Shown here in pieces: positions 4,353 through 59,504 of a DNA stretch of 64,000 nucleotides. Under the pieces are notes generated by a model. The model was not told where the DNA came from, ran no database searches, and was given only the letters and a program-made list of their open reading frames with translations. Source of the stretch: Malacoraja senta. Taxonomy: Eukaryota. The position numbers were made by a program, and so were the translations under genes. The DNA lies in the NCBI GenBank assembly GCA_038087875.1, contig CM075994.1, positions 6,448,001 to 6,512,000 on the forward strand, given 5' to 3'. The stretch's first letter is position 1. Every line of letters begins with the position of its first letter.

Positions 4353-4422
4353 ATGTACAGGAGAATTCCTGGGATTCACTCCCTCATCGGGATACTTTGG
4401 CTGCTGTTGAGCGACTCTGGAG
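4353..4422 (+). CDS. Gene A exon 1, signal peptide [23 protein letters not shown]
   Basis: ATG, hydrophobic core, phase-1 donor G|GTGAGT. A 70-nt exon conserved at 33478 and 48952. Confidence 0.8.
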
Positions 4423-4883
4423 GTGAGTCCATGCCTTGAGCTCGGGGTGCGGGTGGCGGTAGGGTGGACGAAGGTGTGTTATAGAGAACAGTACAGCACA
4501 TGAACAGGCCATTTAGCCCACAACATCCATGCCGAACATGATGCCAAGTTAAAGTAAACTCCTCTGCCCGCACATAATCCATATCTATGCATTCCCTGTA
4601 TATCAATGTGCCTTTCCAAAAGCCACATAAACCCCCGCTATCGTATCTTCCGTCCACCGCCACTTCCAGCAGCGCATTCCAGACACCCACCACTCTTGGT
4701 GTAAACAAAAACTTGTGGTGCCCCAGTCCCCTCCCACATCCCGAAGACGTGCAGGTTTGTAGTTTAATTGCCCGCAGTGGCGTCTGGAGTGGGTGCGAAA
4801 GTGGAATAATATAGAAGTTGTGTGATCGGGTGATCCATGGTTGACATGAGCTCTGAGTAATGAGTACCCTTTTTCCATGCTCG

Positions 4884-4935
<52 letters not shown>

Positions 4936-5014
4936 GGTCTGTCTGTCTGGTCTGCCTGGTCTGTCTGGTCTGTCTGTCTGTCCTGTCTGTCTGTCCTGTC
5001 TGTCTGTCCTGTCC

Positions 5015-5109
<95 letters not shown>

Positions 5110-8100
5110 ATTTATCCATCCACCTACCCAGGGACTATAAATGCCTGTGAGTGTACCAGGACAGTAAACTGGACTGGTCCAGGAACACTAAGGCCTTGCA
5201 TAAGAAGGGGGAGAACCGTCTGCTCCGCAACTTCAACGTCCGTAGTGAGATGCAGCAAATGTTCTACCAACCGGTGGTAGCCAGTGCCATCTTCGTTGCT
5301 GCTGTGTGCTGTGGCAGCGGGGCGAAGGCTGCGGACTGCAACAGGATCAACAAACTCATCAGGAAGGCTGGCCCCATTCTGGGGGTGGAGTTGGATTCAT
5401 GGGAGGTGGTCTTGGAGGGGATGATGCTTCGCAAACTGCGGAGCATCCTGGACAATACAGCTCACCCACCCATGACACACTGGTCAACCTGAGTAGTACC
5501 TTCAGTAACAGACTGCTTCCACCAAGATGCAGGACAGAACGCCACAGGAGACCCTTCTTCCCTGTGGCTATCGAACTTTACAACTCCTCCCCCCTCTAAT
5601 GGGGTAGACTGAGACTGAGACTGACCCACCCCCCATCCTCATTCTGTGCACATTCCCAAAGCCATACCACTCTCACTTTATTTTCATGTTTCATGTTTCA
5701 TGTTTTTTTTTATGACTGTTGGCAAATTAATTTCCTTCCTGCGTAAATAAAGTTCTAGTGTATCGGATCGGATCTATCGAAACGCGTTACAATGTACCTC
5801 TGTACATGTGACAATAAACTAAACTAAACTATCTATCTTCTAATCTATCTAAATAATCTATCTATACAATCTATCAATATATCTAATCTATCTAATATAT
5901 CAATCTAATCTATCTAGTTTATCTATCTATTTAATTTATCAATCTAATCTATCCATCCAGACTGGGTTCAATAACAACCTCCAGAAATGTCTGTGTGGAA
6001 TTTACAAATTCTCCCTCTGACTGACCCTTGCAAACTTCAAATTGAATATGTGACGTGATGCCATATTCTGAATATGTGAATAAGTAAGTAAGTAACTAAG
6101 CAAGTAAGTACGTTTATTGGCCATGTATTCACATACAAGGAATTTGCCTTGGTGCCCCGCCCACAAATAACAACATGACATACAGTGACAGTTACGAATG
6201 ACTCAGAAAACACTAAATATTAATAATAATAAGAGATTAATGATAAAACACCATTGATCAAGCATGTGAACCAACAAAATACCAGATCAAAGGGAGGCTA
6301 CATTTTTTGACTGTTGAGTAGAGCAACTACTCGTGGATAAATACTGTTTTTATGTCTGGCTGTGGCAGCTTTGACAATCTGGAGTCGCCTTCCAGAGGGA
6401 AGTGATTCAAAGACTTTGTGGCCAGGGTGAGAGGGGTCAGAGATGATCTTGCCCGCTCGCTTCCTGGCCCTTGCAGTGCACAGTTCATCAATGGAGGGAA
6501 GGTTGCAGCCAATAACCTTCTCTGCTGATCGGACGATTCGCTGCAGCCTCCAGGTGTCGTGCTTGGTGGCTGAGCCAAACCAGACCATGATGGAGAAGAT
6601 GAGAACAGACTCTACGATGGCCATGTAGAATTGGACCATCATTGCCTGTGGCAGATTGTGCTTCCTCAGCTGCCGTAGGAAGTACATCCTCTGGTGTGCC
6701 TTTTTGACTGTGGAGTCGATAGTGCTGCTGGCAGAATATGCCATATTCTGAATATGTGGAAGGAAAACGGCGCACCCGGAGAAAACCCACGCGGTCACGG
6801 GGCGAACGCAGAAAATCCGTACAGACAGCAGCCGTTGTCAGGATCAAACCCGGGTCTCTGTCGCTGCAAGGCAACAAGTCTACCGCTGCTGTTTTAAATA
6901 CTGTGGGGGTTTTTTGTTAATCTGCTTTTCTTGAAACAGAACATGTGTCATTAACGGTGATAAATATCAGTGAGACCTTCACTGTAGAGGTGTGTAACGT
7001 TAGCTTGGTATGTTCACTGAAGCACGGCACCGAGCCAATATATCCAATCTATCTAATATATCAATCTATCTAATGTATCTAGTTTATCTACCTATTTAAT
7101 TTATCAATCTAATCTATCCATCTAGACTGGGTTCAATCACAACCTCCAGAAATGTATGTGTGGAGTTTGCATATCTCCCTGTGACTTACCCTTGCTAACT
7201 CCAAATTGAAGATGTGAGATGCTGCCATGGGTAGACCTGCTGCCCTTGCCATTAGGGTTGGGGCAACTCACTGCTGTGCTGGGAAACTATGAACACCAAC
7301 ACACCAGAGCTTATGGCACTAATACCTTGTCCTTCTGTTTCAAGTCTGGGACAGACTGCTGGGAAACCAGGCACTCGTCGCTTGGTGAATGGGACACTGG
7401 GACATGTCAGTCACATTACCAGGATGTATCTCAGGAGAAAACATTTCAATCCTCACTTGGGATTACCAAAGTTCACCAACAACAGGAAATATCCCATTAT
7501 GTACGAAAACTCAAAACAGTCCAACAAAATATGGCAAACAGCGAATCAGATTAAACTTAAAAGACTAGTCTGCAAATACAGAACCTACAGCCCTGTCCCA
7601 CGGTGCGAGTTCGTTCCAAGAGCTCTCCCGAGTTTTGAAAAAATCAACCTCGTGGTAAGCACGGAGAATGAACATAGCGGGTACGTCGAAGCTCGGGGAC
7701 GTCACTTAGCGCTAACGGCGGGTAAGCATGGGAAGACTCGTGAAGATTTTTCAACATGATGAGAAATGTCCACGAGAGCCCCGAGTACCGACGAGTGGCC
7801 ATTATCGTAAATCTCCGAGTTCGAATCAGGGCATACTCGGGAGAACTCTTGGAATGAACTCGGACCGTGGGACAGGGGACAGTTTGCTTTTCATTGAAAC
7901 AGAACGTGTATTATTACCGGTGATAACTATCTGTGAAACCTTCACTGAAGAGGTGTGTAACGTTAGCTTGGTATGTTCACTGGAGCACGGTACCGAGCCA
8001 GTCTACACTTGGTGGTCAGGAGACGCAAGGTCACGGCAGATGGATCGCACATACTGATTGACGAAGGGAGAATGCTGGCAATATCCATAGCTCTACCGAA

Positions 8101-11100
8101 CAACAACAGCGTGTACAACTGCACCGTGGGGAACCCTGTTAGTGAGGAACCCTGTTAGTGATGAGACGCTGAGCGTGGATCTCACAGAGCTCTGACCTGC
8201 CCATGAAGGTTTGGGGCTTTATCTTTTCACACTAAGCACACTTCTCAAATAAAATAAGGGCTATTTATTATGTACCTAAACAAATCCAAAATCCTTCCGA
8301 TGGAAGAAATCAGGTAATAAATTTAGTTTAAACAGGCACAAAATGCTGCCAGTGGGATTCTATGCCATAGAAGGCAGTGGAGTCTAATTCAATGGATGTA
8401 TTCAAGAGAGAGAGTTAGATAAAGCTCTTGGGGTTAACGGAATCAAGAGATATGAAGTAAAAGCAGGAACAGGGTACCGATTGTGGATAATCAGCCACGG
8501 TCATATTGTATGGCTCGAAGGGCTGAATGGCCTATTCCTGCACGTACTTTCTATGTTTCTAAGATTATTCATTCAGAGCCTCATCTGTATGGGTGGTGGA
8601 ATACTCATGTGCCTGCTGCCCTTGTCCATTAGGGTTGGGACAACTCACTGCTGTGCTGGGAAACTATGGACAACAACACACCAGAGCTGATGGCACTAAT
8701 ATCTTGTCCTTGTGTTTCAGGTCTGGGACAGACTGCTGGGAAACCAGGCACTCGTCGCTTGGTGAATGGGACACTGGGACAGTCAGTCACGTTACCAGGA
8801 TGTATCTCAGGAGAAAACATTTCAATTCTCACTTGGGATTACCGCAATTCACCAACAACAGGAAAGGTTAAATTATGTATGAAAACTGAAAACAAGCCAA
8901 TACAATGTAACAAACAGGGAATTAGGTTAAACCTGAAGGACTGTAGTCTGCAAATACAGAACCTAACAGAACATGATCAAGGTCTATATGAAATGAACTT
9001 ATGGACGACTTTGGCTGTCCATCTACAAGTGACAGAACTGACGATTTATGGTAATCTATTTCAATTTTTTAAACGATACATTTTCCAATCTAACAATCTT
9101 TAAGAACTTAAAGATGTAAGGGGAGATGCTTTCGATGTGAGTCCATGTCTGTGGGTTATACGGGCAGGGTGAATACTGAAACATTGCGTGGGTTGGAGTC
9201 CTTGCTTATTTAGGAACCCATCCTCAGTATTTGCCGTTTGAACATTAATGGCAGTGTATTAGGATGGGTTCTTGAAGGGAGGTCTCTCCAAGCCATCTGA
9301 CTTCTCTGTACTATGGTAGGTCCACAGACATTAAACTTTCTCTGCTAATAACGAGTTTACTTGTGATCCAGTTTTGGTGGCAAAGTGTAACCTGGACGAT
9401 TCGTTTTTGTAAACTCACGGGAAGGATTTTGAACTAAAACTACGGGTGCTTGTCTGTACACAGTTTGTGAATTGTCTGTAGTGTGTGTAGGATAGTGCTA
9501 ATGTGCGGGGATCGCTGGTGGGCGCGGACTGGGTGGGGCGAGGGCTTGTTTACGCTGTATCTCTTAATGTTCTCGTGGGAAACTCATGGCGAGCAGCTTC
9601 TGGTTGTTATTATTCCATCGCTTGTATTTGTGCTTTTCTTTGAAACAGAACGAGTGTCATTACCAGTAATAAATATCAGTGAAGCCTTCAATGACGGGGT
9701 GTGTAACGTTAGCTTGCTATGTTCATTGGAGCACGGCACCGAGCCAGTCTACACTTGGTGGTCAGGAGATGGCAAGGTCACGGCAGATGGGTCCCACATA
9801 CTGACTAACGAAGGGAGAAGGCTGGCACTATCCATAGCTCTACCCAACAACAACAGCGTGTATAACTGCACCGTGGGGAACCCTGTCAGTGAGGAGACGC
9901 GGAGCGTGGATCTCACAGAGCTCTGTCCTGCCCATGAAGGTCTGTGGCTTTATCTTTTCACACTAAGCACACTTCTCAAATAAAATAAGGGCTATTTATT
10001 TCGTTCCTATCCAAATCGGAGGGAAAGGCAGCATCTCTGGAGAGAAGGAATGCTTGACGTTTTGGGTCGAGAAGAAGGGCCTCGACCCAAAACATCGCCC
10101 ATTCATTTTGTCCAGAGAAACTTTCGGTTTGAACCAGCATCTGCAGTTCCTTCCTATACAATAGCTTTAGTTTAGTTTAGGTTAGAGATACAGCATGCAA
10201 ACAGCCTTCGGCCCACCGAGTCCGCGCCGACCATCGATCACCCGTACACTAATTCTATCCTACACGTTAGGGACAATTTACAGAAGCCAATTAACCTACA
10301 AACCTGCACGTCTTGGGGATGTGGGAGGAAACCGGAGCACCCGGACAAAACGCACGCGGTCTCAGGGAGAACGTACAAACTCCGTACAGACAGCATAGGT
10401 AGTCAAGATCGACCAGGGTCTCTGGCGTTGGGAGGTAGCAATACCACCGCTGAGTTACTCCAGCATTGTGTGTCTATCTTCGGTGTAAATCGGCATCTGC
10501 AGTTCCTTCCTACGCCAAACGAAAAATAAGCTGTGAGCAAAAAACCCAGACATGAATGCAGAAATACAGAATCAGTAAACAATTCCATGGTAGTGCAAGT
10601 GATGGTCCCTAGTCTTCCATTGGCGAGGTTGGACTTGAATTATGCAAGTTGGTTCAAGACCCTGATGGTTGCATGAAAGTACATTTAACTAGAGAACGAC
10701 TGCAGATGTTGGAACCTTGAGCAAAAGTCAGTGCTGAAGAAACTCAGCGGGTCAGGCAGCTTCTGTAGAGGGAATGATCTAAAGAATGATATATTTCATT
10801 CCTGAGATACAGCCAGACCCATCGATTTCCTCCGGTGCGTTGTTTTTTTACCTTTAACCATAGCTGCTTCTCCCTAACTTTGCCTTACAGCGTTTACAGC
10901 GCTTGAAGCGCCAGAAACCCAGGTTCGATCCCGACTACAGGTGCTGTCTGTACGGAGTTTGTACGTTCTCTCCGTGACCGCGTGGGATTTCTCCGAGATA
11001 TTCGGTTTCTTCCCACACTCCAAAGACATACAAGCTTGTAGGTTAATTGGCTTCTGTATACGTGTGATTTGTCCCTCGTGTGTGTAGGATAGTGTACGTG

Positions 11101-12383
11101 TGCGGGGATCGCTGGTAGGTGCAGACTCGGTGGGCCGAATGGCCTGTTCTTGGGCTGTATCTCTAAAAATAAAACTAACATAGCTCAGCCTCTCCAGTCT
11201 AAACTTGGAAGCTGAATTTTCCATTTTAAGCAAAGATTATTGAACAGGCGACTAAAACCATGTGAGGAAAAGTTAGGGTGAATACACAGTCGTCTACCCG
11301 GTGTAGGGGAATGGAGAACCAGAGGACATAGGTTTAAGCTGAAAGGGAAGGGATTGATAAGGAAACCGAGGGGCAATGTTTCCCACAGAGGGTGGGTGGT
11401 ACATGAATGAGGAGGGGAGGTACTTGAGGCAGGTACTATAACATAATTTAAAGCTACATGTACATGGATAGTAAAGGTTTAGAAGGAGAAATGCCAAATG
11501 CGGGAATATGGGACTAGCTTAGATGGGACATCTTGGGCGTCATGGACAAGTGGGGCTGAAGGGCACTATTATCTTCTTGCATGACACGTAAGCAATTGCA
11601 GCGAATTTTAGACGCAACCCCGCACGTCACACAAACCAACCTCCCTTCTATCGATTCCATTTATACCTCACGCATAATCAAGGACAAGTCGTACCGTGCC
11701 CACTCCCTCTTCTCCCCTCTCCCTTCAGGCAAAAGTTATAGAAGTGTGAAACTGCACACCTCTAGATTCAGGAACAGTTCCTACTCAGCTGTTATCAGGC
11801 AACTGAATCATCCTACCACAACCAGAGAGCAGTGCTGAACTACTATCTATCTCTTTGATGTCCCTCGGTCTATCCTTGACCGGACTTTACCTTGCACGAA
11901 ATGTTATTCCCTTATCATGTATCTATACATTATAAATGGATTGATTGTAATCATGTATTGTCTTTCTGTTGACTCGATAGCACACAACAAAAAGCTTTTC
12001 ATTGCAGCTCGGTACACGTGACAATAAACTAAGCTGAACTGAACTGATCTCCATCATCCTGTTCCTGTTCATCAACAAGTCATTAGATTGGCAATTGAAA
12101 TATTGATTTATCTTCAGGTTATAAGCCACTGAGAATCTCAAGCCGTGTACTTTTTACAGCCGCCTCAATCATCTTCATCTCAGCTATCTTTTGCTACATG
12201 TATTGCAAGAGGACAAGCTCAGCACAAGTCAGTACCTTAGAATATTTTTTCTTCGTCCAATTCCAGGTAATAATCTGTAACCCACCCACCCCTCTCTCCC
12301 TCTCTCTATTCCCTCTGCCTTACCAGTTAGTGCGCCCATTTCTCCCACTATCCCATCCGTCCCCTTACCCTTCAACGATTTGA
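4353..12383 (+). CDS. CD2/SLAM-family-like Ig receptor, gene A (spliced model, about 285 aa, short cytoplasmic tail)
   Basis: Exons 4353-4422 (leader), 8721-9050 (IgV), 9649-9939 (IgC2), 12118-12227 (TM), 12327-12383 (stop TGA). All junctions are GT-AG and phase-compatible (1,1,1,0). Homologous exons recur in genes B and C. Confidence 0.72.
4884..5108. repeat. (TGTC)n microsatellite in gene A intron 1
   Basis: Direct tandem tetranucleotide with a degenerate middle. Confidence 0.97.
5120..5820 (+). mobile_element. Rex1/Babar-like LINE 3' fragment (homologues about 34020-34730 and 49995-50690)
   Basis: RT C-terminal peptide [21 protein letters not shown]...INKLIRKAG. Present in intron 1 of all three genes, so it predates the duplications. 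Confidence 0.7.
6079..6737 (-). mobile_element. 5'-truncated Rex1/Babar-like LINE with 21-bp TSD
   Basis: ORF 6298-6798 (KKAHQRMYFLRQLRK...LQRIVRSAEKVIG...SLPSGRR), (TTAC)n tail, TSD ATGCCATATTCTGAATATGTG at 6058-6078 and 6738-6758. Confidence 0.85.
6940..7037 (+). pseudogene. Truncated IgC2 pseudo-exon (cassette 1 of locus A; V exon deleted)
   Basis: gaaacag|aacatgtgtcatt...cacggcaccgagcca matches the first third of the C2 exon, then joins the pre-V intron sequence. Confidence 0.8.
7344..7589 (+). pseudogene. IgV pseudo-exon (cassette 2 of locus A)
   Basis: Acceptor AG mutated to AA (tttcaa), +1 insertion (ggacatgtcag), 3' end removed at a MITE. Confidence 0.85.
7591..7877. mobile_element. 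MITE with about 43-bp terminal inverted repeats
   Basis: Left ccctgtcccacggtgcgagttcgttccaagagctctcccgagt matches the reverse complement of the right end with few mismatches. Confidence 0.85.
7903..8208 (+). pseudogene. IgC2 pseudo-exon (cassette 2 of locus A)
   Basis: 1-nt deletion (ggagacgcaagg) giving a stop at 8055-8057, plus a 16-bp internal tandem duplication (gaaccctgttagtga). Splice sites intact. Confidence 0.85.
8721..9050 (+). CDS. Gene A IgV exon (CD2/SLAM N-terminal domain)
   Basis: Acceptor tgtttcag|, donor TATG|gtaatc, 330 nt open. Motifs [13 protein letters not shown] in C strand, [17 protein letters not shown]. Confidence 0.85.
9649..9939 (+). CDS. Gene A IgC2 exon
   Basis: Acceptor gaaacag|, donor GAAG|gtctgt, 291 nt. 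SLAM-type four-Cys pattern [22 protein letters not shown]. Confidence 0.88.
10180..10450 (-). mobile_element. HE1-like SINE (orthologous copies about 38160-38440 and 52500-52780)
   Basis: Reverse-complement SINE body, at the same position in intron 3 of all three genes. Confidence 0.75.
10885..11175 (+). mobile_element. HE1-like SINE (orthologous copies about 38875-39135 and 53250-53510)
   Basis: SINE head and body motifs. Confidence 0.75.
12118..12227 (+). CDS. Gene A transmembrane exon [37 protein letters not shown]
   Basis: Acceptor tcttcag|, donor CAA|gtcagt. About 20 hydrophobic residues followed by a KR stop-transfer. Conserved in B and C. Confidence 0.8.
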
Positions 12384-12413
12384 CCGTGGATGGAATGCGC
12401 CAAGAATTAATTG
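12327..12413 (+). CDS. Gene A cytoplasmic exon 1 (87 nt; frameshifted relative to B/C, stop at 12381-12383)
   Basis: Polypyrimidine acceptor ccttaccag|, donor ATTG|gtgaaa. Paralogues are 88 and 82 nt. Confidence 0.65.
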
Positions 12414-12429
12414 GTGAAACTGTGGATAT

Positions 12430-12790
12430 GCGAGAGACTTGGATGTGGATGTGGAGAGGATTTTTCCAATAGTGGGAGACACTAGGACTAGAGGTCATAG
12501 CCTCAGATTTAAAGGACGGTTTTTTAGGAAGGAGATCAGGAGGAATGTATTTTGTCAGAGGGTGGTGAATCTGTGGAATTCTTTGCCATAGAAGGCTGTG
12601 GAGGACGTCAATGGATATTTTTGTGGCAGACGGAGATAGATTCTTGATTAGTACAGGTGTCAGGCGTTACAGGGAGCAGGTAGGATAATAAGGTTAAGAG
12701 GGAGATACAGATCAGCCATGATTCAATGGCGGGGTAGACTTGATGGGCCGAATGGCCTAATTCTGCTCCTATCACTTATGACCTTATGTG
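12430..12790 (+). mobile_element. CR1 3' fragment in the last intron (also about 40400-40760 and 58890-59250)
   Basis: gatgtggagaggat...ggtggtgaatctgtggaattc...gatcagccatgat CR1 3' sequence. Confidence 0.75.
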
Positions 12791-12913
12791 GGGCCAAAGA
12801 TGACGGTTTCTGCGGGGATTATAGGGATGATTGAAACAATATGCTGGCATCGCGCTAGATTGGGATGGGACATTAAAGTAATTTTAAAATACACCAAAGA
12901 AACGTCCCATTAG

Positions 12914-13041
12914 CGAGGCGAGCTGCAGATAGTTCAACCCATGTGGTTTGGACCCTGGCTGCAGATGCTGTCGCATTCTATCGCCCACTGCGGTCCCAGA
13001 CCACACGTAGCGTGAACAAAAATACGCGTGTGATCGGATAA
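12914..13041 (+). other. Gene A homologue of cytoplasmic exon 2 (predicted 3'UTR in A because of the upstream stop)
   Basis: Close match to 40884-41005 and 59377-59504. The ancestral frame is still open to TAA 13039-13041. Confidence 0.55.
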
Positions 13042-13827
13042 ACAGATGGGGCTTGGAACAAGGTGCAGCAGAGAGGACAGTCCGTGCTTAAAGGTGATAA
13101 CCGCACCGTATTTAAGTTGACAAACCCACAGTAACATCCTCTGACAACACCATTCTGCCTTTTTTTTTGTATGTAATTCTCTAAAGTGAAAAGTCATGGC
13201 GGTGACCGATAAGGCATAATCAGAAAAGGACACAACGTGCTGGAGTAACTCAGCGGGTCTGGCTGGATCTCTGGAGAGCACGGAAAGGCGACACAGCTTC
13301 GAGTCACAGCTCCATCCAAGACCGCAAGAAATTGCAGCGAATTGTAGACGCAGCCCAGACCATCACACAAACCGACCTCCCTTCCATTGATTCCATCTAC
13401 ACCTCACGCTGCCTTCGCAAGGCCAGCAGCATAATCAAAGAGGAGTTACACCCTGTCCACTCTCTCTTCTCCCCTCTCCTATCAGACAAAGGTACATTGC
13501 AGACATCCATATTCAAGGACAGTTTATTCCCAGCTGTTATCAGGCAACTGAATCATCCAGCCACAACCAGAGAGAAGTGCTGAACTACTATCCCCCCCTC
13601 ATTGGCGACCCGCAGACTATCCTTGATTGGACTTTGCTGGTTTTACCTTGCGCTAAATGTTATTCCCTTATCACTGTAAGTGGCTTGATTGTAATCATGT
13701 GTTGTCTTACCGCTGACTGGGTAGCACTCAACAAAAGTTTTTCACTGTACCTCGGTGCAGGTAACAATAAAGAAAACTGTAAACCAAATTGTACTATACC
13801 TTCTTCAAACTGATTTGGTGGAAGTTG

Positions 13828-15696
13828 CGGAGAAGAAGGCTGGAAAAGGGGGAGAGGCATGCCAAAACGTGGCAGGTAATAGTGAGACAGGTGAATGGGG
13901 AGCTTGATAGGCAGGTAGTGTCATGGAAACATACAGCGTGGAAACAGGCTCTTCGGCCCAACTTGCCCACACCGACCAACATGCCCCATCTACACTCGTC
14001 AGACCTGCCTGCATTTGGCCCATATTCTTCCAAACCTATCATATCCATGTACCTGTCTAATTGTTTCTTGAACGTTGCAATGATCCCTGCCTCAACGCTC
14101 ACTACTGGAAATATATATTTGAAGGAACTGCAGATGCTCGTTTAAACGAAAGATAGACACAAAATGCTGGAGTAACCGAGCGGGACAGGCAACAACTCTG
14201 GAGAGAAGGAATGCGTGACGTTTCAGGTCGAGACCCTTCTTCTACTGCTGGAAAGATCCTCTCCACGTCCGTTCTATCTCGAACTTTCATTGTCTGGCAA
14301 GTTTCAATGAAATCCCCATCATCCTTCTAAACTCCAGCGAGTACAGGCCCAGAGTCTTCAAATGCTCCTCATACATTAACCCGATCATCCCTGGGATCAT
14401 TCTCGTAAACCTCCTCTAGACCCTCTGCAATGCCACCACATCCTGCACATCCTTCCTCAGTTATGGGACCCAACACTGCTCACAGTATTGCAAATGTGGC
14501 CTCACCAACACCTTATAAGTTATTGTGCTTGGAATTAAATCCTCTCCACTGTAAGTCTCGGCTGATACTTTAACTGAACGTATTTTTATACTTTAGTGAT
14601 ACAGTGTGGAAACAGGCCCTTCGGCGCATTGAGTCCGCGCCGATCAGTGATCATCCCGTACACAGTAGCATTATCCTACACACTTGGGACAATTTACAAT
14701 TTTACTGGAGCCAATTAATCTACAAATCTGTACATCTTTGGGAGGAAACCGGAGCACCCGGAGAAGAAGGCTGGAAAAGGGGGAGAGGCATGCCAAAACG
14801 TGGCAGGTAATAGTGAGACAGGTGAATGGGGAGCTTGATAGGCAGGTAGTGTCATGGAAACATACAGCGTGGAAACAGGCTCTTCGGCCCAACTTGCCCA
14901 CACCGACCAACATGCCCCATCTACACTCGTCAGACCTGCCTGCATTTGGCCCATATTCTTCCAAACCTATCATATCCATGTACCTGTCTAATTGTTTCTT
15001 GAACGTTGCAATGATCCCTGCCTCAACGCTCACTACTGGAAATATATATTTGAAGGAACTGCAGATGCTCGTTTAAACGAAAGATAGACACAAAATGCTG
15101 GAGTAACCGAGCGGGACAGGCAACAACTCTGGAGAGAAGGAATGCGTGACGTTTCAGGTCGAGACCCTTCTTCTACTGCTGGAAAGATCCTCTCCACGTC
15201 CGTTCTATCTCGAACTTTCATTGTCTGGCAAGTTTCAATGAAATCCCCATCATCCTTCTAAACTCCAGCGAGTACAGGCCCAGAGTCTTCAAATGCTCCT
15301 CATACATTAACCCGATCATCCCTGGGATCATTCTCGTAAACCTCCTCTAGACCCTCTGCAATGCCACCACATCCTGCACATCCTTCCTCAGTTATGGGAC
15401 CCAACACTGCTCACAGTATTGCAAATGTGGCCTCACCAACACCTTATAAGTTATTGTGCTTGGAATTAAATCCTCTCCACTGTAAGTCTCGGCTGATACT
15501 TTAACTGAACGTATTTTTATACTTTAGTGATACAGTGTGGAAACAGGCCCTTCGGCGCATTGAGTCCGCGCCGATCAGTGATCATCCCGTACACAGTAGC
15601 ATTATCCTACACACTTGGGACAATTTACAATTTTACTGGAGCCAATTAATCTACAAATCTGTACATCTTTGGGAGGAAACCGGAGCACCCGGAGAA
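13828..15696. repeat. 931-bp direct tandem duplication
   Basis: Identical ORFs at offset 931. CGGAGAA at 13828, 14759 and 15690. Confidence 0.95.
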
Positions 15697-17477: not shown

Positions 17478-17642
17478 NNNNNNNNNNNNNNNNNNNNNNN
17501 NNNNNNNNNNNNNNNNNNNNNNNNNNNNNNNNNNNNNNNNNNNNNNNNNNNNNNNNNNNNNNNNNNNNNNNNNNNNNNNNNNNNNNNNNNNNNNNNNNNN
17601 NNNNNNNNNNNNNNNNNNNNNNNNNNNNNNNNNNNNNNNNNN
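17478..17642. other. Assembly gap (165 N)
   Basis: Run of N. Confidence 1.
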
Positions 17643-48749: not shown

Positions 48750-48951
48750 TTCTGCTCCTATGACTTATGAACATGAATTATCTTTCCTCTGCCCTCTGAG
48801 TTCTGATGAGGGTCATGTCCAACATTTCTTTGCCTTCCACAAATGCTGCTCGAACTGCTGAGATCCTCTAACAGGTTATTGTTTTCTTACTACAGATTCC
48901 AATATCTGCAGTCTCTTGTGGCTCAATAACAACCTACTCTTCAGAGAAGAC

Positions 48952-49021
48952 ATGACCAGGAGAGTCCCTGGGATTCTCTCCCTCATCAGGATACTTTGGC
49001 TGCTGTTGAGTGACTCTGGAG
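48952..49021 (+). CDS. Gene C leader exon [23 protein letters not shown]
   Basis: ATG, hydrophobic core, donor G|GTGAGT. Confidence 0.8.
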
Positions 49022-52000
49022 GTGAGTCCATGCCTTGAGCTAGGGGTGGGGATGGCGGTAGGGTGGAAGGAGATGTGCTATATAGAACAGTACAGCACTC
49101 GAACAGGCCATTCAGCCTACAACATCCATGCCGATCATGATGCCAAGTTAAATAAATTCCTCTGCCCGCACATAATCCGTATCTATGCATTCCCTTTATA
49201 TCCATGTGCCTCTCTGAAAGCCCCTTAAACCCCACTATCGTATCTGCCCTCCGCCACCACTTCTAGCTGCGCATTCCAGATACCCACCACTCTCTTCCAG
49301 CTTCAGACGAGTTAAAATAAAACTATTCCTCCAGTTTGACGACCTCGAAAAGATCATCTACACATTTATCTCCTCCCGCCTCGATTACTGCAACTCCCTT
49401 TACACTTGCATCAGCCAATCTTCCCTGTCCCGCCTGCAACTGGTCCAAAACGAGACTCCTGACGCGCACCCGAAAAAGGGACCACATCACCCTGATTCTG
49501 GCCTCTCTCCACTGGCTCCCTGTGCGGTTCCGAATAAATTTCAAGATCCTTCTTTATGTTTACAAAGCCATTAATGGGCTTTCCCCCACCTACATCAAAA
49601 GTCTGCTTACCCACCACACCACCTCCAGGTCCCTCAGATCGGCCGACTTGGGGTTACAGTACATCCCACAGTCTAGGCATAAGCTCAGGGGCGACCGTGC
49701 CTTTGCGGTTGCAGCTCCTAGACTGGAACAGCATCCATCTTCCCATCAGAACTGCCCCCTCCATCGACTCTTTTAAGTCGAGACTTAAAACTCATCTTTA
49801 CTCTCAAGCCTTTCTTGCTGTCCTCTGAGGGAGGGCTAAATGTGTGTATTTATGTATGTACTTAATCTATGAACCAATGTTGGATAACGTTAGTACCTCC
49901 ACCAATGTAAAGCACTTTGGTCAACAAGAGTTTTTTTAAATGTGCTATAGAAATAAAAGTGACTTGACTCGGTGTAATAAAACATGTGGTGTCCCATGCC
50001 GACTGGACTGGTCCAGGAACGCTGGGGCCCTCTACAAGAAGGGACCAGTAATTTTTGAGAAGGCTCTGCTCCTTCAACGTCTGCAGTGAGATGCTACAGA
50101 TGTTCGACCAACCGGTGGTAGCCAGTGCCATCTTCTTCGTTGCCATGTGTTAGGGCAGCGGGGCGAAGGCTGCGGACGGCACCAGGATCAACAAACTCAT
50201 CAGGAAGGCTGGCTACGTCCTGGGGGCGGAGTTGGATACATGGGAGGTGGTCTTTGAGTGGACGATGCCCCTCAAACTGCAGAGTACCCAGGACAATACA
50301 GCTCACCTGCTCCATGACACACTGGTCAACCTGAGGAGCACCTTCAGCAACAGACTGGTTCCACCATGATGCAGGACAGAACGCCATAGGAGATCCTTCT
50401 TCCCTGTGCCTATCAAACTTTACAACTCCTCCCCCTCAGTCATGGGGAAGAATGTGACTGAGACCGAGACTGACCCTAACCACCCCCCTCCCCCCCCTCC
50501 TCAATCTTTGCACATCCACAAAGCCTTACAACTCGTCCGTTTATTTTCATGTTTCATGTTTAATTTTTTTGTTTTAATGTTGGCAAATAAATTTCCTTCC
50601 TGCGATAAATAAAGTTCCATCGTATGGTATCGTATCTATCTAAAAGCTTTTCACTGAACCTCGGCACATGTGACAATAAACTAAACTATCTATCTATATC
50701 CTAATCTATCTATATAATCTATCAATATATCTAGTCTATCTAATACAGGTATATCAATCTATCTAGTTTATCTACCTATCTATCCATCTATTTAATTTAT
50801 CAATCTAATCTATCCATCCAGACTGTGTTCAATCACAACCTCCAGAAATGACTGTGTGGAGTTTGCATATCTCCCTGTGACTAACCCTTGCTAACTTCAA
50901 ATTGAAGATGTGAGGTGATGCCATGGGTAGACCTGCTGCCCTTGTCCATTGGGTTGGGACAACTCACTGCCGTGCTGGGAAACTATGAACACCAACACAC
51001 CAGAGCTGATAGCACTAAAACCTTGTCCTTGTGTTTCAGGTCTGGGACAGACTGCTGGGAAACCAGGCACTCGTCGCTTGGTGAATGGGACACTGGGACA
51101 GTCAGTCACGTTACCAGGATGTATCTCGGGAGAATACATTTCGATCCTCACTTGGGATTACCACAGTTCACCAACAACAGAAAAGGTTCAATTATGTATG
51201 AAAACTCAAAACAGTCCAATACAATATGACAAACAGGGAATCAGGTTAAACTTACAGGACTGTAGTCTGGAAATAGAGAACCTAACAGAACATGATCAAG
51301 GTCTATATGAAATGAACTTAAGGACGAATGAGTGGCTCCATGTACAAGTGATGGAACTGAAAGTTTATGGTAATCTAGTTTCATTTTTTCAAACGGTACA
51401 TTTTCCGATCTAATAACCTTCACGAAGTTAAAGATGTAAGAGGAGATGCTTGTGAGCCAAAATCTGTGGGGCCCTTGCTTGTTCAAGAACCAGTCCTCAG
51501 AATTTGCTTTTTATATATTAATGGAGGAGCACTTGGATGGGTTCTTGAAGGGAGCTCTCGTCAAGCCATCTGACTTTTCAGAAAGATGATAGGGCCACAG
51601 AAATTAACGAGAATAACGAGTTTACTTGTGATCCAGTTTTGGTGGCAAAGTATAAACTGGACAATTCATTTTTGTAAACTCACGGGAAGGATTTTCCACT
51701 AAAACTACGGGTGCTTGCACAGAGTTTGTAAATTGTCCGTAGTGTGTGTAGGTTAGTGCTAATGTGCGGGGATGGGCGCGGACCTGGTGGGCTGAAGGGC
51801 TTGTATCTCTAAACAGTCTTCTACTCTTAATGTTCTTGTGGGGAAACTCATAGCTAGCACCAGCTGGTTGTTATTATTGCATGGCTTGTATTTGTGCTTT
51901 TCTTTGAAACAGAACGAGTGTCATTACCAGTAATAAATATCAGCAAAGCCTTCACTGACGGGGTGTGTAACGTTAGCTTGCTATGTTCACTGGAGCACGG

Positions 52001-55000
52001 CACCAAGCCAGTCTACACTTGGTGGTCAGGAGATGGCAAGGTCGCGGCAGATGGGTCGCACATACTGACTAACGAAGGGAGAGGGCTGGCACTATCCATA
52101 GCTCTACCCAACAACAACAGCGTGTATAACTGCACTGTGGGGAACCCTGTTAGTGAGGAGACGCGGAGCGTGGATATAACACAACTCTGTCCTGCCCATG
52201 AAGGTTTGTGGCTTTATCTTTTCACACTTCTCAAATAAAATAAGGGCTATTTATTTCGTTCCTATCCAAATCCCCAAATCCTTCCGATGGAAGAAATAAG
52301 GTAATATATTTAGTTTGAACAGGCACAAAGTGCTGGAGTAAATGTCTCAGCGGGACAGGCAGCATCTCTGGAGAGAAGGAATGGGCGTTTCGGGTCGAGA
52401 AGAAGGCGTAGACCCGAAACGTCGCCCATTCCTTCTTTCCAGAGATACAATTTTCGGAAAAAAACCCACATCTGCAGTTCCTTCCTACAAGATAGATTTA
52501 GTTTCGTTTAGAGATTCAGCATTGAAACAGTCCCTTCGGCCCACCGAGTCCGCGCCGACCATCGATCACCCGTACACTGATTCTATCCTACACGTTAGGG
52601 ACAATTTACAGAAGCCAATTAACCTGCAAACCTGCACGTCTTTGGGATGTGGGAGGAAACCGGAGCACCCGGACATAACGCACGCGGTCACAGGGAGAAC
52701 GTACAAACTCCGTACAGACAGCATCCGTAGTCAAGATCGACCCGGGTCTGTGGCGATGTGAGGTAGCAACGCTACCGCTGAGTTACTCTAGCATTGTGTG
52801 TCTATCTTTGGTGTAAACCAGCATTTGCAGTTCCTTCCTGCGCAAAAGGAAAAATAAGCTGTGTGCAAAAAAAACAACCAGACATGAATGCAGAAATACA
52901 CAATCAGAAAACAAGTCCATGGTAGTCCATAGCCTTCCATTGGCGAGGTTGGGACTTGAATTATGCAGGTTGGTTCAAGACCCTGATGGTTTCAGAAAAG
53001 TACATTTAACTATAGAGAGACTGGAGGCGCTGGAATCTTGAGCAAAAATCTGTGCTGAAAGAACTCAGCGGGTCAGGCAGCTTCTGTGGAGGGAATGGTC
53101 TGAAGAAGGATCTATTTCCCTCCCGAGATACTGCCTGACCCACCTCGATTTCCTCCGGTACGTTTTTTTCAAACCTTTAACTCACTTCTAATAAAATAAA
53201 ATTTAAAAAAAAAATAAAAACTATAGCTGATTCTCCCTAAGTTTCCCTAACAGCGCTTGTAGCGCCAGAAACCCTGGTTCGATCCTGACGGCGGGTGCTG
53301 CCTGTACGGAGTTTGTACGTTCTGCCCGTGACCGCGTGGGTTTTCTCCGAGATCTTCGGTTTACTCCCACATTCCAAACTTGCACACACAGGCTTGTAGG
53401 TTAATTGGCATCTGTATATGCGTGCATTGTCCCTAGTGTGTGTAGGATCGTATATGTGTGCAGGGATCGCTGGTCGGTGCAGACTCAATGGGCCGAGGGG
53501 CCTGTTTCTCAACAAAGAAAACTAACAGAGCTCAGCCTCTCCAGTCTAAACTAGAAGCACCATTTTCCATTTTAAGCAAAGATTATTGAACAGGCGTCTA
53601 AAACCATGAGAGGAATAGATATGGTGAATGCATAGTCGTCTACCCAGTGTAGGGAAATGGAGAACCGGAGGACATAGGTTTAAGCTGAAAGGGAAGGGAT
53701 TTATAAGGAAACCGGAGGGGCAACGTTTCCCACAGAGGCTGTCAGGTACAAGAATGAGCACAGGAGGTAGTTGGGGCAGGTGCTATAACATAATTTAAAG
53801 CCATTTGCACAGGTACATGGATAGGAAAGGTGTAGAAAGATAAAGGCCAAATGCGGACATATGGGACTAGCTTAAATGGGACATCTTGGGCGGCATGGAC
53901 AAGTTGGGCTGAAGGGCACATTTTCCTTCTTGAATGACACATAGGCAATTGCAGCGAATTGTGGACGCAGCCAAGGCCGGCACACAAACCGACCTCCCTT
54001 ACATTGACCCCATCTACATAGCAATGTTACAAAATTTTGAGATTTTAAAAATCAAGTCTGTAATTTATCCCATCAGATAAAGCATAAAAAGAAGTTTAAT
54101 TTGACATCTAATTCACTTTCATATCTTCAGTATTAAAATAGTTATGGCCATTTTCATACTTGGAAATTAGCATCTTGTTCCCTATTGCTTTTCCATTGAC
54201 TTAACACAAAAGCTGTGATCGAGGACAGTCGAAAGCCCATAACTTTCTTAAAAATTAAGAGAACTGAAAGAAATTTTCAGTTATTACAGATTGAAGCTTT
54301 CTGAAACAAATATGAAACAATCTTACTTAGATGACATGAAATTAAAGCATATAATTACAGGGCTGCCAACATTGGGTGAGAGTTGAGAGTGAGAAATTGC
54401 GAGGGAGTGCAGCGGCCGGGGGGGGGGGGGGGGGGAAAGGGGGTGTTCCCCCTCCCACAGTAGGGAGCTTTTGCATTGTCCAGCTTGAAATTGTGCAATC
54501 TGGAGCATACTGTAGCGAGTCTTTCAACTTGCATTTGAATGCAACATTTATGTCTTAAATTGGATTAGGTATGAATAAGGTTAGGCTATATTACATTCCT
54601 AATTACATTCCACAATAGAGCCAGGCTCTGATCAACAGGTGCAGCACATGAATGACTGTATTCATATATGGAAATCAGATTATATTCATGCTGTTATATA
54701 TATAGAGAGAGAAAACTCAGAGAAACAAAGCAAAAGTCGGACTTCCATCACTGTTCTGCACAAATAAATCAACCAACCTTGTTCAAGAAGGAACTACAGA
54801 TGCTGGAGAATCGAAGGTTACACAATAATGCTGGAGAAACTCAGCGTGTGCAGCAGCATCTATGGAGCGAAGGAAATAGGCAACATTTCGGGCCGAAACC
54901 CTTCTTCAGACGGTTTCAACCTTCCCCTTTGAATATAGAAACAAGATGAAAATAATGCCACATATTCAATCATATATTGTTCAATGAAATTAAGATATAT

Positions 55001-56515
55001 ATGTAAAAATATATATGGAAACAGGCCCTTCCGCCCACAAAGTCCACACAGACCAGCAATCTATCATACACCAATTCCATCCATCACGCCAAAGACAATT
55101 TACAGAAGCCAATTAACCTACAAACCTGCACTTCTTTCGGATATGGGAGAAACCGGAATATCCAGAGAAAACCCATGTGGTGGTAAGGCAGCAACTCTAC
55201 CACTGCACCACCGTGCCACCCCATTACATTATTTTTTCTGTAATATATTTATTATGGTGTCACGTGAATAAAGATGAACACATGATTCTGATTTCTGCCC
55301 TTAGTTGGATAACACACATGTCCAGTCATTGTGTTTTATGGCTGGTTTTCAACCTCTTCAGGCTGAAGGTCTCGACTCGAAACATCACCCATTCTTTCTC
55401 TCCAGAGATGCTGCCTGTCCTGCTGAGTTTTTCTAGTTTTTAGTGTCTATCTTCAGTTTAAACCAGCATCTGCAATCCCTTCCTACACTATTTGTTAAGC
55501 AAAACGGGTCCTATTCTCATTATATAATTTTGCGATCAGCGTGAGAGCATGAGAGTTTTGTGAAATGCGTGAGTCTCACGCTCAATGCGTGAAGGTTGGC
55601 AGCCCTGCTAATAATGCAAACATTTTATGCAAGTTCAAATTGTTTGGACAAAAATCACTTATTACTGCTTTATAACAGTTAAGTTACATCAAGACCATTT
55701 CAGAAATTATGGCAGTCAACAAAAAAATCAACTAACAAATTAAAGCAAACTAAAAGAAAATAACATGTTCCCTTTCTTGACTCTACCTCATAAGTACTTT
55801 AACGCTGTTAACAGAGCAAAGGGATATTAATCTCAAGAATCAAAATGTGGAAAGTGAGGGCAATTTTGCTTAAATGGTCATTCTAAGCCCATTCAGATCT
55901 GCATTGTCAGAGTTATACAACATGTACATGGCTGGCCCAATTTGTCCATAATGATCAAGTTGGCATTCTGCGTGCCCAGGGACTGGCTGCCATTCCCAGA
56001 TCAGCTCGCGTCCCAGGGACTGGCTGCAGTTCTCAGGTTGGCTTGCCTGCCCCGACCCCGTGAAAATGAATTGAAAAACCCCCCGCGGTTTTTCGGGTTA
56101 CGGGCTGGATTCGCCCCGTGTGCCGTAGGTTGCCGAACCCTGTCCTAGATGTTTGGCCTCATTGTGGTCCCCCCCCCCCCCCCATGTTTTACAACCAATT
56201 CACCTGGTTAGTTCTATCTCCAGCTGCTTCATGTTGTCGGCGACTGCACATCCAACCAAGAAAGAAGAGAAGAGAAGAGATGCGACGTCACTCACAGCCG
56301 CCAACTGACGCGCATCCCCAGACTGCAGAGATTGCTGTGATGTGGCGCAAAAGAGACAAACTGTGCAGGGACTGAACACAGCGTGAGAATTCTGTCGTCA
56401 GCGTGAACATTGGCTGAAATGCGTGACTCTCACGCTCAAAGAACGAGAGTTGGCAGCCCTGTCTAAAGCCAGGATGTGACAACAGACACACAGGGAGACA
56501 CATACACAATGGAAG

Positions 56516-56546
<31 letters not shown>

Positions 56547-59504
56547 GAGACGGACACACACACACAGGGAGACAGACAGACACACACACAGGAAGACACA
56601 CAGACACGCACACACACAGGGAGACACACACACACACAGGGAAACACACAGACACACACACACACACACGGAGACACACACACACACACAGGGAGACACA
56701 CAGACAAGCACACACAGGGACACACACACACACAGGGAGACACACACAGGGAGGCACACACACACACAGGGAGACACACACACACAAGGAGACACACACA
56801 GGGAGGCACACACACACACACAAGGAGACACACACAGGGAGACAGACACACAAGCGCACACCTTTTCTTCCCCCTCCCTCCATCCACCCCTTCCTCCCTC
56901 CTGCCCCCATCCTTCCCTCTTTCCTCCCCCTCCCTCTTTCTCCACTTTCTCCTTTCCTTCCTTCATCCCCTTTCTACATTCCCTCCCCTTGTCTCGCTTT
57001 GCCTCCATCCCTCCCTTTTTTTCTTTCCCTCTCTCTCTTTCCCCCCTCCCTCTCTCTCACCGGCCGCCCAATGGGGAGTCTGGCGGGCACAGTGCAGGGT
57101 GGATTGGCGGCGCTGGCGCTGCAGAGTGAGTTGAAGGGCAGGAGGGAGGGAGGGAGGGAGGGAGCGAGGCTGCAGCAGCGGCCGGCAGCACAGCGCTCAC
57201 AGCCGGCACAGAGAGCTGCTGACACCCGGCGGCTGCACATCCAACCAAGAGAGAAGAGACACGACGTCACTCACAGCGTCAAGTGACGCGTACCCCAGAC
57301 CGTGCAGATCCCTGGAACGCGGCGCAAAGGGACAAACTATGCAGGGACTGAACTCAGCGTGATAACTCGGTCATGAGCGTGAGGACGTGAGAATTTGCTC
57401 CAAGGCATGATTCTCACGCTGAAAGCGTGAGAGTTGGCAGCCCTGTAATTAGTTAGTTACCTAATTGTAGCTAATTACAAAATTCAATTACTAGATCTAA
57501 ACATCTATCAATTTCTTAAGAATAGATTAACATTTTTAAATAGCCTAAGTGTCCAAATAACATTCACACAAGAATTCACAATATAACATAATTTTTAAAT
57601 CTCATTGTCATGGATTTATAGGCCAAATGGAAGGAACTTAATGTTTAATACCTGTAAATTAATGGCCATTTAAATCATCTTGCGAGTGGGTTTTTGTGGA
57701 ACCCGATCATTTGGAATGTTGCAGTTGCGGTGAATTTAAACCCGTATCGGCATGAAAAATACTGCCGGTTCGTTCGGGGGGAAAAAATCACCGTTTCGCA
57801 ACTTAAAATGTGAATTAAAGACATCTTAAGGAGCACTTTTATACATAAAATAGACAGCTTTCGTTTACCTGTCCCGTGCATGAAATCCGTCCCCATTGTC
57901 GGCGTTGACGGCTTTAGAAGCTGATTTTAAAATAACTCCAGCGCTGAACTCGTCGGGTGATTAAAAAATAAAACGATTCTTCAGCAAAAGCTTGCACTCC
58001 AACGAAATATAATCCAGGACAAGGTAGGAGAACCCCCCACCCCCCCATCAAAGGCACCAAAATCACGCACACGGCCAGTGGCAGAATTGCAGCGCCGCTG
58101 AAGGTAAGTATTGTAACATACCTAATCTACACATCACGCTGCCTCGGCAAGGCCAGCAGCATAATCAAGGGGGAATTATACCCTGTCCACTCCCTCTTCT
58201 CCCCTCTCCTATCAGGCAAAAGGGATAGAAGGTGAAAACCTATACATCCAGATTCAGGGACACTTTCTTCCCAGCAGTTATCAGGCAACTGAATCATCCT
58301 ACCACAACCAGAGAGCAGAGATTAACTACTATCTACCTCTTTGATGTCCCTCGGTCTATCCTTGACCGGACTTAACCTTATCCTGTATCTAAACACTATA
58401 AATGGATTAATTGTAATCATGTATTGTCTTTCTGCCGACTCGATAGCACGCAACAAAAAAGCTTTCCACTGTAGCTCGGTACACGTGACAATAAACTAAA
58501 CTGAACTGAACTGAACTCTCTGATTCTGTTCCTGTGCACCAACAAATCAATAGGTTGGAAACTGAAATATTGATCTCTCTTCAGGTTATAAACCACTAAG
58601 AGTCTCAAGCCGTGTACGTTTTACAGCCGCCACAATCATCTTCATCTCAGCTATCATTTGCTACATGTATTGTAAGAGGACAAGCTCAGCACAGGTCAGT
58701 ACCTTTGAATATTTTTCTTCGTACAATACCAGGTAATAATCTGTAACCCATCTCCCCCCACCTCTCTCTCTCTTCCCTCTGCCTTACCAGTTTGTGCGCC
58801 CATTTCTCCCACTATCCGTCCCCTTACCCTTCAACGATTTGACCGTGGATGGAATGCGCCAAGAATTAATTGGTGAAACTGTGGATATGCGAGAGGCTTG
58901 GATAGAGTGGATGTGGAGAGGATGTTTCCAATAGTGGGAGACACTAGGACTCGAGGTCATAGCCTCAAAATTAAAGGACGATCTTTTAGGAAGGAGATGA
59001 GGAGGAATGTATTTTGTCAGAGGGTGGTGAGTCTGTGGAATTCTTTGCCACAGAAGGCTGTGGAGGCGGTCAATGGATATTTTATGGCAGAGGGAGAGAG
59101 AGTTTTGATTAGTACAGGTGTCTGGGGTTATGGGGAGCAGGTAGGATAATTAGGTTAACTGGGAGATTTCGATCAGCCATGATTCAATGGCGGAGTAGAC
59201 TTGATGGGACGAATGGCGTAATTCTACTCCTATCACTTATGACCTTATGTGAGGCCAAAGCTGACGGTTTCTGCGGGGATTATAGGGCTGTTTGAAACAA
59301 TAGGCAGGCATGGGGCTAGATTGGGATGGGACATTAAAGTGATTTTAAAATACACCAAAGATACTTGTCCCATTAGCGAGGCGAGCTGCAGATAGTTCAA
59401 CCCATGTGGTTTGGACCCTGGCTGCAGATGCTGTCGCATTCTATCGCCCACTGCGGTCCCAGACCACACGTAGATTGAACAAAAATACGCGTGTGATCGG
59501 ATAA
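48952..59504 (+). CDS. CD2/SLAM-family-like Ig receptor, gene C (spliced model, 336 aa)
   Basis: Exons 48952-49021, 51040-51369, 51913-52203, 58585-58694, 58791-58872, 59377-59504 total 1011 nt, open and GT-AG throughout. Confidence 0.82.
49295..49968 (+). mobile_element. L2 LINE 3' fragment specific to gene C intron 1
   Basis: SRLDYCNS...LQLVQN...[25 protein letters not shown]. Absent at the matching site of A and B. Confidence 0.85.
51040..51369 (+). CDS. Gene C IgV exon
   Basis: 330 nt open, canonical splice sites. Contained in track ORF 50949-51413. Confidence 0.87.
51913..52203 (+). CDS. Gene C IgC2 exon
   Basis: 291 nt, four-Cys SLAM-type C2 pattern intact. Confidence 0.88.
54358..57445. 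mobile_element. Nested element with perfect 13-bp TIR CAGGGCTGCCAAC and TAATTA target duplication
   Basis: TIRs 54358-54370 and 57433-57445. Extra right ends at 55595-55607 and 56449-56461. Confidence 0.72.
56480..56860. repeat. (CA)n / CACAGGGAGA compound repeat followed by a pyrimidine-rich tract to about 57060
   Basis: Directly visible low-complexity tandem sequence. Confidence 0.95.
58585..58694 (+). CDS. Gene C TM exon [37 protein letters not shown]
   Basis: 110 nt, canonical splice sites. CTT to CGT (Leu to Arg) at 58617-58619. Confidence 0.8.
58791..58872 (+). CDS. Gene C cytoplasmic exon 1 [27 protein letters not shown]
   Basis: 82 nt. A frame-preserving 6-nt indel versus gene B supports coding status. 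Confidence 0.68.
59377..59504 (+). CDS. Gene C cytoplasmic exon 2 [42 protein letters not shown]
   Basis: Acceptor cccattag|, stop TAA 59502-59504. Confidence 0.62.

Follow-up and report, generated by a model that had tools for sequence, protein, structure and literature searches.

Three tandem SLAM/CD2-family receptor genes without a motif-bearing tail in the genome of the skate Malacoraja senta

A 64,000-nt stretch of the genome of the skate Malacoraja senta (contig CM075994.1, positions 6,448,001 to 6,512,000; hereafter the window) carries three neighbouring, intact genes for surface receptors of the SLAM/CD2 family. Self-comparison of the window revealed three tandem units on the + strand, at ~4098–16000, 33218–42189 and 48749–61746, which share 83–91% nucleotide identity. 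A tandem cluster of three such genes had been proposed in a preliminary description made from the letters alone, and this proposal was confirmed: each unit contains leader, V, C2 and transmembrane (TM) exons with compatible phases, and the start given there, 4353, is the ATG of leader 1. The V-domain motif DQGLYEM and the accompanying C2 motif occur once in each unit, at the positions that were given, and an additional, frameshifted motif pair lies at 8001–8114. We consider it likely that the three genes are intact paralogues, arranged in tandem, that represent a tail-less SLAM/CD2 branch specific to skates, termed type A, and that their products would serve as cell-surface ligands, decoys or modulators.

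Gene 1 begins with a 70-nt leader exon (4353–4422) that opens with ATG, ends at a phase-1 GTGAGT donor and matches the leaders of Rhinoraja longicauda model P0168 and Leucoraja erinacea model P0167; the leader exons of gene 2 (33478–33547) and gene 3 (48952–49021) likewise extend over 70 nt from ATG to a GTGAGT donor. The leader is followed in genes 1, 2 and 3, respectively, by a V-set exon of 330 nt (8721–9050, 36638–36967 and 51040–51369), a C2 exon of 291 nt (9649–9939, 37567–37857 and 51913–52203) and a stalk/TM exon of 110 nt (12118–12227, 40082–40191 and 58585–58694). The phase is 1 at the end of the leader, V and C2 exons and 0 at the end of the TM exon; the AG/GT sites are canonical, with phases 1-1-1-0, in all three genes, and 24 of 24 splice sites are retained. 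When joined, these four exons give an open frame of 267 codons in each copy. The terminal exon (13187–13421, 41157–41381 and 59648–59847) opens, directly after a conserved CTAAAG acceptor, with a homologous TGA as its first codon (13187–13189, 41157–41159 and 59648–59650). In gene 1, where the 3′ boundary is given as mapped, the remainder of this exon is 3′ untranslated region and includes an interspersed repeat with 12 occurrences in the window. Each gene consists of five exons, the last of which supplies the stop codon only.

Each gene is predicted to encode a type I membrane glycoprotein of 267 aa, comprising a signal peptide, a V domain without a disulfide, a C2 domain, 6–7 N-glycosylation sequons and one TM helix. 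Pfam recognised V-set on the V exon (E = 1.3e-7) and Ig/I-set on the C2 exon. In all three copies, the F-strand motif D-x-G-x-Y-E-M carries Met at the Cys position, indicating a V-set domain that lacks the canonical B–F intersheet disulfide. The preliminary description had combined this missing F-strand Cys with a four-Cys C2 domain; the former holds in every copy, and the latter fails in gene 2. Judged from Cys positions in the sequence, with disulfide pairing being predicted, Cys152, Cys158, Cys207 and Cys226 are all present in genes 1 and 3, and gene 2 has Arg158 at the predicted B-strand Cys (LLRSLEHG). In gene 2, Tyr also replaces one juxtamembrane Cys. In addition, Arg240 precedes the hydrophobic core of the TM segment in all copies, and gene 3 carries a second Arg (L242R). 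The TM charge of the paralogues had been said to differ, which is correct to the extent of this one extra Arg at the TM start of copy 3; Arg240 and Arg242 are located at the N-terminal edge of the predicted helix and not mid-membrane.

The exon chain was further supported by transcripts and gene models of related skates. A 1063-nt Logan contig (L001; run SRR24105893), a spliced transcript of a related skate with a 272-aa product (P0169), maps to gene 1 at 8628–9050, 9648–9941, 12116–12226 and 13182–13421, corresponding to the V, C2, TM and terminal exons. The L. erinacea RefSeq model P0167 shows an identical exon chain in its own genome, with the TM exon spliced to the terminal exon. Moreover, contigs of a relative from two runs (X10, record 15; X16, record 30) contain the exact 9049/9050 to 9648/9649 join and extend past both exons, and a near-identical contig from run X1 (1 mismatch in 123 nt) departs from the genome at the V acceptor. 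The leader-to-V junction is backed by homology with annotated relatives (P0168, ...SDSGG joined to LGQTAGKP). Reads aligned to 11900–17470 were dominated by interspersed repeats and gave no information on the TM, tail or ITSM exons.

Two further open stretches adjoin the V and C2 exons. An ATG-initiated open reading frame (ORF) in intron 1 runs in frame into every V exon (8666–8720, 36583–36637 and 50985–51039), including a dead V′ exon of gene 1 described below (7289–7343). The Logan transcript product P0169 begins with this ORF as well, and the stretch may be an alternative first exon or an intron that is retained. If the C2 donor is read through, a short hydrophobic C-terminus results in all three copies (9940–9983, 37858–37901 and 52204–52238), an ending also seen in the R. 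longicauda Gnomon models P0004 and P0151. Such read-through may reflect an isoform that is soluble or lipid-anchored, or plain intron retention.

Because the terminal exon opens with TGA in all three copies, the proteins of the window end in ...KRTSSAQ. The terminal exon of the relatives adds GN(A/V)VAVTDKA; in L. erinacea these 10 aa (GNVVAVTDKA) are retained as a tail, and the corresponding codon of the window copies is TGA. The cytoplasmic stub (...C-Y-M-Y-C/Y-K-R-T-S-S-A-Q) contains no immunoreceptor tyrosine-based switch motif (ITSM), immunoreceptor tyrosine-based inhibitory motif (ITIM) or other tyrosine motif, and the cytoplasmic ITSM of SAP/EAT-2-coupled SLAM receptors, T-x-Y-x-x-[V/I], is absent from the supported models. 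The corrected models comprise 267 aa and have no motif-bearing tail.

A different 3′ structure had been put forward, with six exons per gene and a 336-aa receptor whose signalling tail of ~70 aa is non-standard and differs in length among the copies. The tail of such a model would end in the counterpart of an alternative tail exon at 12965–13015 (+), which is homologous to the tail that Gnomon gives R. longicauda P0152. An open frame ending in TAA (59502–59504) does exist in the homologous exon; position 59504, where the cluster had been taken to end, closes a third frame of that exon, and P0152 reads the exon differently to obtain a 57-aa tail. However, the frame that closes at 59504 can be reached only through one further exon, which is absent from every protein model or transcript of the relatives examined. 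The P0152 frame stops after 16 codons in gene 1 and likewise in genes 2 and 3, and TGA is the first codon of the terminal exon backed by transcripts in 3 of 3 copies. A six-exon structure therefore appears highly unlikely. Since all three genes stop at the same homologous TGA, a difference in tail length is not supported, and neither are the proposed signalling tails, the supported models being essentially tail-less.

The family relationship of the genes was assessed by sequence, profile and fold searches. A search with the C2 exon against 1.8 billion representative proteins returned relatives of 297–421 aa through this single-domain match, all from cartilaginous fishes and all named SLAM-family-like by NCBI, and further searches added models of Leucoraja, Amblyraja and Rhinoraja. 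The closest relatives are skates with 84–94% identity, in agreement with the cartilaginous-fish origin assigned earlier. The labels "SLAM family member 9-like" and "signaling lymphocytic activation molecule-like" are attached to relatives in over 15 genomes of cartilaginous fishes, among them those of Rhinoraja, Leucoraja, Amblyraja, Pristis, Mobula, Hypanus, Narcine, Callorhinchus, Heptranchias, Scyliorhinus and Heterodontus. Of these relatives, L. erinacea P0167 ("signaling lymphocytic activation molecule-like isoform X1") shares the leader, V, C2 and TM exons with the window genes at 88–92% aa identity, and two R. longicauda proteins (XP_078272144.1 and XP_078272149.1) are annotated as "SLAM family member 9-like"; copy number and V-face residues differ between the window genes and these annotated skate relatives. 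A profile search of a 5.8-billion-protein collection yielded, among the matches listed, chondrichthyan relatives and one weak teleost match, and NCBIfam, a prokaryote-oriented library, contained no model matching the family.

For comparison with proteins of known structure, the orthologue P0167 and a 21-sequence family profile (A3) served as queries standing for the window proteins. The best PDB match was SLAMF6 over both domains, with 1.5e-14 in a phmmer search of P0167 and 3.5e-20 with the profile (profile positions 36–226). PDB matches that cover the V domain were CD2/SLAM members only (SLAMF6, CD2, CD48, CD84, SLAMF1 and CD58). The AlphaFold model of P0167 had a mean predicted local distance difference test score (pLDDT) of 78, with values above 80 over most of both Ig domains. 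In Foldseek searches with this model, the top 12 Swiss-Prot matches comprised SLAMF1, SLAMF9, SLAMF8, 2B4, Ly-9, SLAMF5, CD48 and SLAMF6, and the top 8 PDB matches comprised NTB-A, CD2, CD48 and CD58, with target-normalised template modelling scores of 0.72–0.79. Membership in the CD2/SLAM family, as the preliminary description had suggested from the domain architecture, can thus be regarded as well supported by sequence comparison and by the predicted fold.

Other V–C2 families of the immunoglobulin superfamily, such as CEACAM, HEPACAM or CLMP/CAR-like proteins, were weighed against this assignment. CEA and CEACAM1 scored nearly equal to SLAMF6 (1.9e-14 and 2.2e-19), the N domains of CEACAM proteins also lack the disulfide, and HEPACAM and CLMP appeared at ranks 13–22 of the fold search. 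Nevertheless, the CEACAM matches begin at profile position 97 and thus take in only the end of V together with C2, whereas every match extending over the V domain belongs to CD2/SLAM, as do the top 12 fold matches in Swiss-Prot and the top 8 in PDB. Furthermore, the C2 domain has four Cys; C2 domains of CD2/SLAM proteins have four Cys and the A/B domains of CEACAM proteins have two. Sister paralogues also carry TxYxxI at the position typical of SLAM receptors. Placement in one of these other families is extremely improbable.

The sister paralogues define the second of two groups into which the skate relatives fall. Type A combines a leader MARRVPGIHSLIG... with its own TM segment and a minimal tail. 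In type B, the leader differs, the TM segment reads ...ALHIGLITAGIVVGAIIL... and the tail carries an ITIM-like PLYAVI and a canonical ITSM, LTTIYDEI. The two types are ~80% identical over V–C2, and the TM segment of type A can still be aligned to that of type B. In a maximum-likelihood tree, the skate clade received support of 100/100, within which type A, including all three window genes and supported at 100/99, was separated from type B; the R. longicauda copies formed a clade of their own. ITSM-bearing genes persist in skates as type B and in all other cartilaginous fishes sampled; LTTIYDEI-type tails occur in other rays, sharks and chimaera, and for this reason type A represents the derived state.

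Remains of an ITSM-bearing tail were detected downstream of gene 1. A relic of the penultimate tail exon (16516–16570, +; PQRDLCELDASGGEET*) contains an in-frame TAG at 16564–16566, where relatives have a sense codon, and a second relic (16918–17018, +; AQLTTIYDEIKFYPDLDTAG...) is homologous to the last type-B exon. The latter contains TTIYDEI (16929–16949), the sole ITSM in the window. Splicing of the type-A TM exon to these relics, which would restore the ITSM, was ruled out, as the phase-0 join meets the TAG at 16564–16566. Searches of the window by tblastn and fuzzy regular expressions detected no type-B TM exon (ALHIGLITAG...), no ITIM exon (APNTE...LYAVI) and no ITSM exon besides the 16516–17018 relic, and no ITSM relic was found behind genes 2 and 3. 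L. erinacea resembles the window in having the same exon order and a degenerate ITSM relic downstream of the gene. In its type-A locus, degenerate ITSM-tail exons (PQRDLRQLDASGGEE; QLTTI*DEMKFYPDLDTAG) lie at 20965–21486 (-) of JAMYXN010000212.1 (L002), ~3 kb downstream of the type-A gene and on the opposite strand, whereas the window relic is in direct orientation; the ITSM tyrosine codon itself has been turned into a stop (TTI*DEM). These relic exons are fossils of a lost signalling tail, and type A is a skate-specific, tail-less branch descended from ITSM-bearing SLAM-like genes. In this branch the TM exon diverged, splicing leads to a terminal exon partly derived from a repeat, and the ITSM exons were left decaying behind gene 1.

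Differences among the three proteins were concentrated in the V domain, where 30 of 110 positions vary, compared with 10 of 98 in C2 (Fisher p = 0.002). Moreover, 23 of the 30 variable V positions lie on the C–C′–C″–F–G half, as defined from the AlphaFold model (p = 0.002), so that the claim that the paralogues differ in their ligand face was upheld. Nei–Gojobori ratios of nonsynonymous to synonymous substitution rates (dN/dS) were 0.73–0.92 for the whole V domain, 0.30–0.88 for C2 and 0.25–0.42 for the non-face half of V, the last being significantly below 1 for one pair (p = 0.02). For the face half, dN/dS was 1.15–1.59, not significantly above 1 (Fisher p of at least 0.6), with a partition that was chosen post hoc. 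The paralogues had been called diversifying; changes do concentrate on the V ligand face, but the excess of dN/dS in the face half is not significant, and from these sequences diversification is plausible but unproven.

These values also bear on whether the copies are decaying, non-functional duplicates, that is, unitary pseudogenes in the making that are open only because they are young. Whole-gene dN/dS is 0.57–0.79, the short tail has been lost through the shared TGA, gene 2 lacks a conserved C2 Cys, and the locus is rich in LINE, Tc1 and other repeats and contains, besides the relic exons, dead cassettes in gene 1. Three of the latter were identified on the + strand by tblastn and alignment: a C2″ fragment (6939–7043) corresponding to the first ~105 nt of the C2 exon; a V′ exon (7344–7637) whose acceptor reads CAA instead of CAG and whose 3′ third is disrupted, with a +1 insertion after 7404; and a C2′ exon (7903–8208) with a 1-nt deletion after 8023 and a 16-nt insertion after 8146. 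In position, V′ corresponds to the V exons of the other two genes, indicating that the live V–C2 pair of gene 1 arose from an internal cassette duplication. However, while these adjacent cassettes gained frameshifts, the four exons stayed open in all three copies despite 6–8% amino-acid-changing divergence. All 24 splice sites were kept as well, the framework half of V shows the low dN/dS given above, and orthologous type-A genes are transcribed in relatives. Decay of the whole set therefore seems distinctly unlikely.

The products of the window genes resemble short-tailed members of the mammalian family. SLAMF8 and SLAMF9, which lack an ITSM, and the glycosylphosphatidylinositol-anchored CD48 likewise combine a V–C2 ectodomain with the absence of a SAP-binding motif, are encoded in a tandem cluster and are among the top fold matches. 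The likeness is one of fold and architecture, with only ~21–24% identity, and the skate tail is even shorter. The relic exons indicate that the skate branch lost its ITSM independently. The ITSM-bearing receptors SLAMF1/CD150, SLAMF6/NTB-A, CD84, Ly-9 and 2B4 and skate type B (P0173, P0170 and P0172) share the ectodomain fold and provide the best sequence matches; they carry TxYxx[VI], and type B also PLYAVI, whereas the window has such a motif only in the dead relic at 16516–17018.

Type-A proteins would most probably act at the cell surface through the V domain, as SLAMF8, SLAMF9 and CD48 do in mammals. They may bind SLAM/CD2-type partners homophilically or heterophilically, the type-B receptors being the most plausible candidates, and would then serve as ligands, decoys or modulators without coupling to SAP/EAT-2 of their own. 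Divergence of the GFCC′C″ face among the paralogues is consistent with diversified binding specificity.

Types A and B might instead form a true paired-receptor system, in which a SAP-type switch receptor was converted to a decoy or to an activating form that would couple, through the Arg residues at the TM edge, to an adaptor of the DAP12, FcR-gamma or CD3-zeta kind. Pathogens or co-evolving self-ligands would then have driven the lineage-specific tandem expansion as well as positive selection on the GFCC′C″ face. In paired immune receptors such as KIR, LILR, PILR and SIRP, tail-less or activating forms arise from inhibitory ones. The skate genes resemble those systems in that the ectodomains are alike while TM segment and tail differ, in the relic motif sequence downstream and in the variation on the ligand face; they differ in that the Arg residues sit at the edge of the membrane segment rather than mid-membrane, and in that the skate genes are known here from sequence. 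We regard a paired system as unlikely. If it were true, paired SLAM receptors would have arisen here independently and long ago, possibly within the elasmobranch major histocompatibility complex (MHC).

Several observations weigh against the preferred view of three intact, tail-less type-A paralogues that act as ligands, decoys or modulators. The run searches returned low-share RNA runs of relatives, no same-species RNA run with a high word share, and two high-word-share runs of a further organism that are probably DNA; the evidence for splicing consequently comes from relatives and from homology rather than from this animal. For the junction of leader and V exon in particular, it consists of annotated relatives and of contigs that leave the genome at 8719–8721. 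Furthermore, the R. longicauda Gnomon models differ at their 3′ ends, with C2 read-through (P0004 and P0151), the 57-aa tail (P0152) or another TM segment (P0168), and alternative isoforms may exist. The TGA common to all copies, like the replacement of Cys by Arg in gene 2, could be a sign of decay. The tree was built from chondrichthyan sequences, and the suggested binding partners and function are inferred purely by analogy with mammalian family members.

SLAM/CD2 receptors tune the responses of lymphocytes and natural killer cells in mammals, and the deep history of the family is poorly documented in the searchable literature. In skates, a lineage-specific, expanded, tail-less branch stands beside the ancestral ITSM-bearing type, and relic exons record the loss of the signalling tail. 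The window offers a clear example, from the oldest jawed-vertebrate lineage, of receptor birth by exon replacement and divergence of the ligand face. The suggestion that the family could be undescribed was not sustained, since the NCBI pipeline already names the relatives SLAM-family-like and slamf genes are drawn in a map of the elasmobranch MHC (2023, PMC10751288). Literature searches on the SLAM family in sharks, cartilaginous fishes and teleosts found no paper analysing cartilaginous-fish SLAM-like genes and one relevant mention, in the same MHC study. Automated annotation already picks out the family in many genomes of cartilaginous fishes, and the window genes are a lineage-specific expansion of it; the corrected gene models, the distinction of types A and B and the relic ITSM exons are incremental additions.

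Two assembly gaps lie within the window. The gap at 17478–17642 is intergenic and abuts a degenerate CA-rich repeat; a gap test showed that it is crossed by no exon or reading frame. It lies 3′ of the last gene-1-associated sequence, the relic exon ending at ~17018, and 15.8 kb upstream of leader 2 (33478). The other gap (3897–4096) is 257 nt upstream of the gene 1 leader. Gene 1 thus sits on a 13.4-kb contig with a gap on either side, and because the two gaps isolate it, its order, orientation and distance relative to genes 2 and 3 come from scaffolding only. Gene 1 is 8–15% diverged from genes 2 and 3 and has its own internal duplication; it is therefore a genuine paralogue.

Additional duplications were observed in the window. 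Positions 1–3896 are a 99.6% identical, 3.9-kb duplicate of 24655–28553, consisting of the 3′ part of a long interspersed nuclear element (LINE) and a low-complexity flank. One copy lies to the left of the 3897–4096 gap and the other upstream of gene 2; to the right of that gap the sequence is only 84% identical to its counterpart, and the genes beside the two copies are only 84–91% identical. A segmental duplication of recent date, gene conversion or an artefact of scaffolding could account for this duplicate. Between the gene 1 terminal exon and the ITSM relic, 13828–14765 and 14759–15696 are tandem copies with 100% identity and a period of 931 bp, and this duplication may be an assembly artefact.

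Within the 64-kb window, no flanking non-repeat gene was found that could be compared with the neighbourhood of the SLAM locus (human 1q23), and the tandem cluster itself is present among mobile elements. A Tc1/mariner-type transposase (34847–35905, -; HTH_Tnp_Tc3_2, 8e-24; DDE_3, 4e-12) is located inside intron 1 of gene 2. LINE-type retrotransposons with RVT_1 ORFs, all on the - strand, were detected at 27278–32457, 2621–4186 and 19888–23346. Elements of this type occupy much of the interval between genes 1 and 2, and their long ORFs suggest that they are young.

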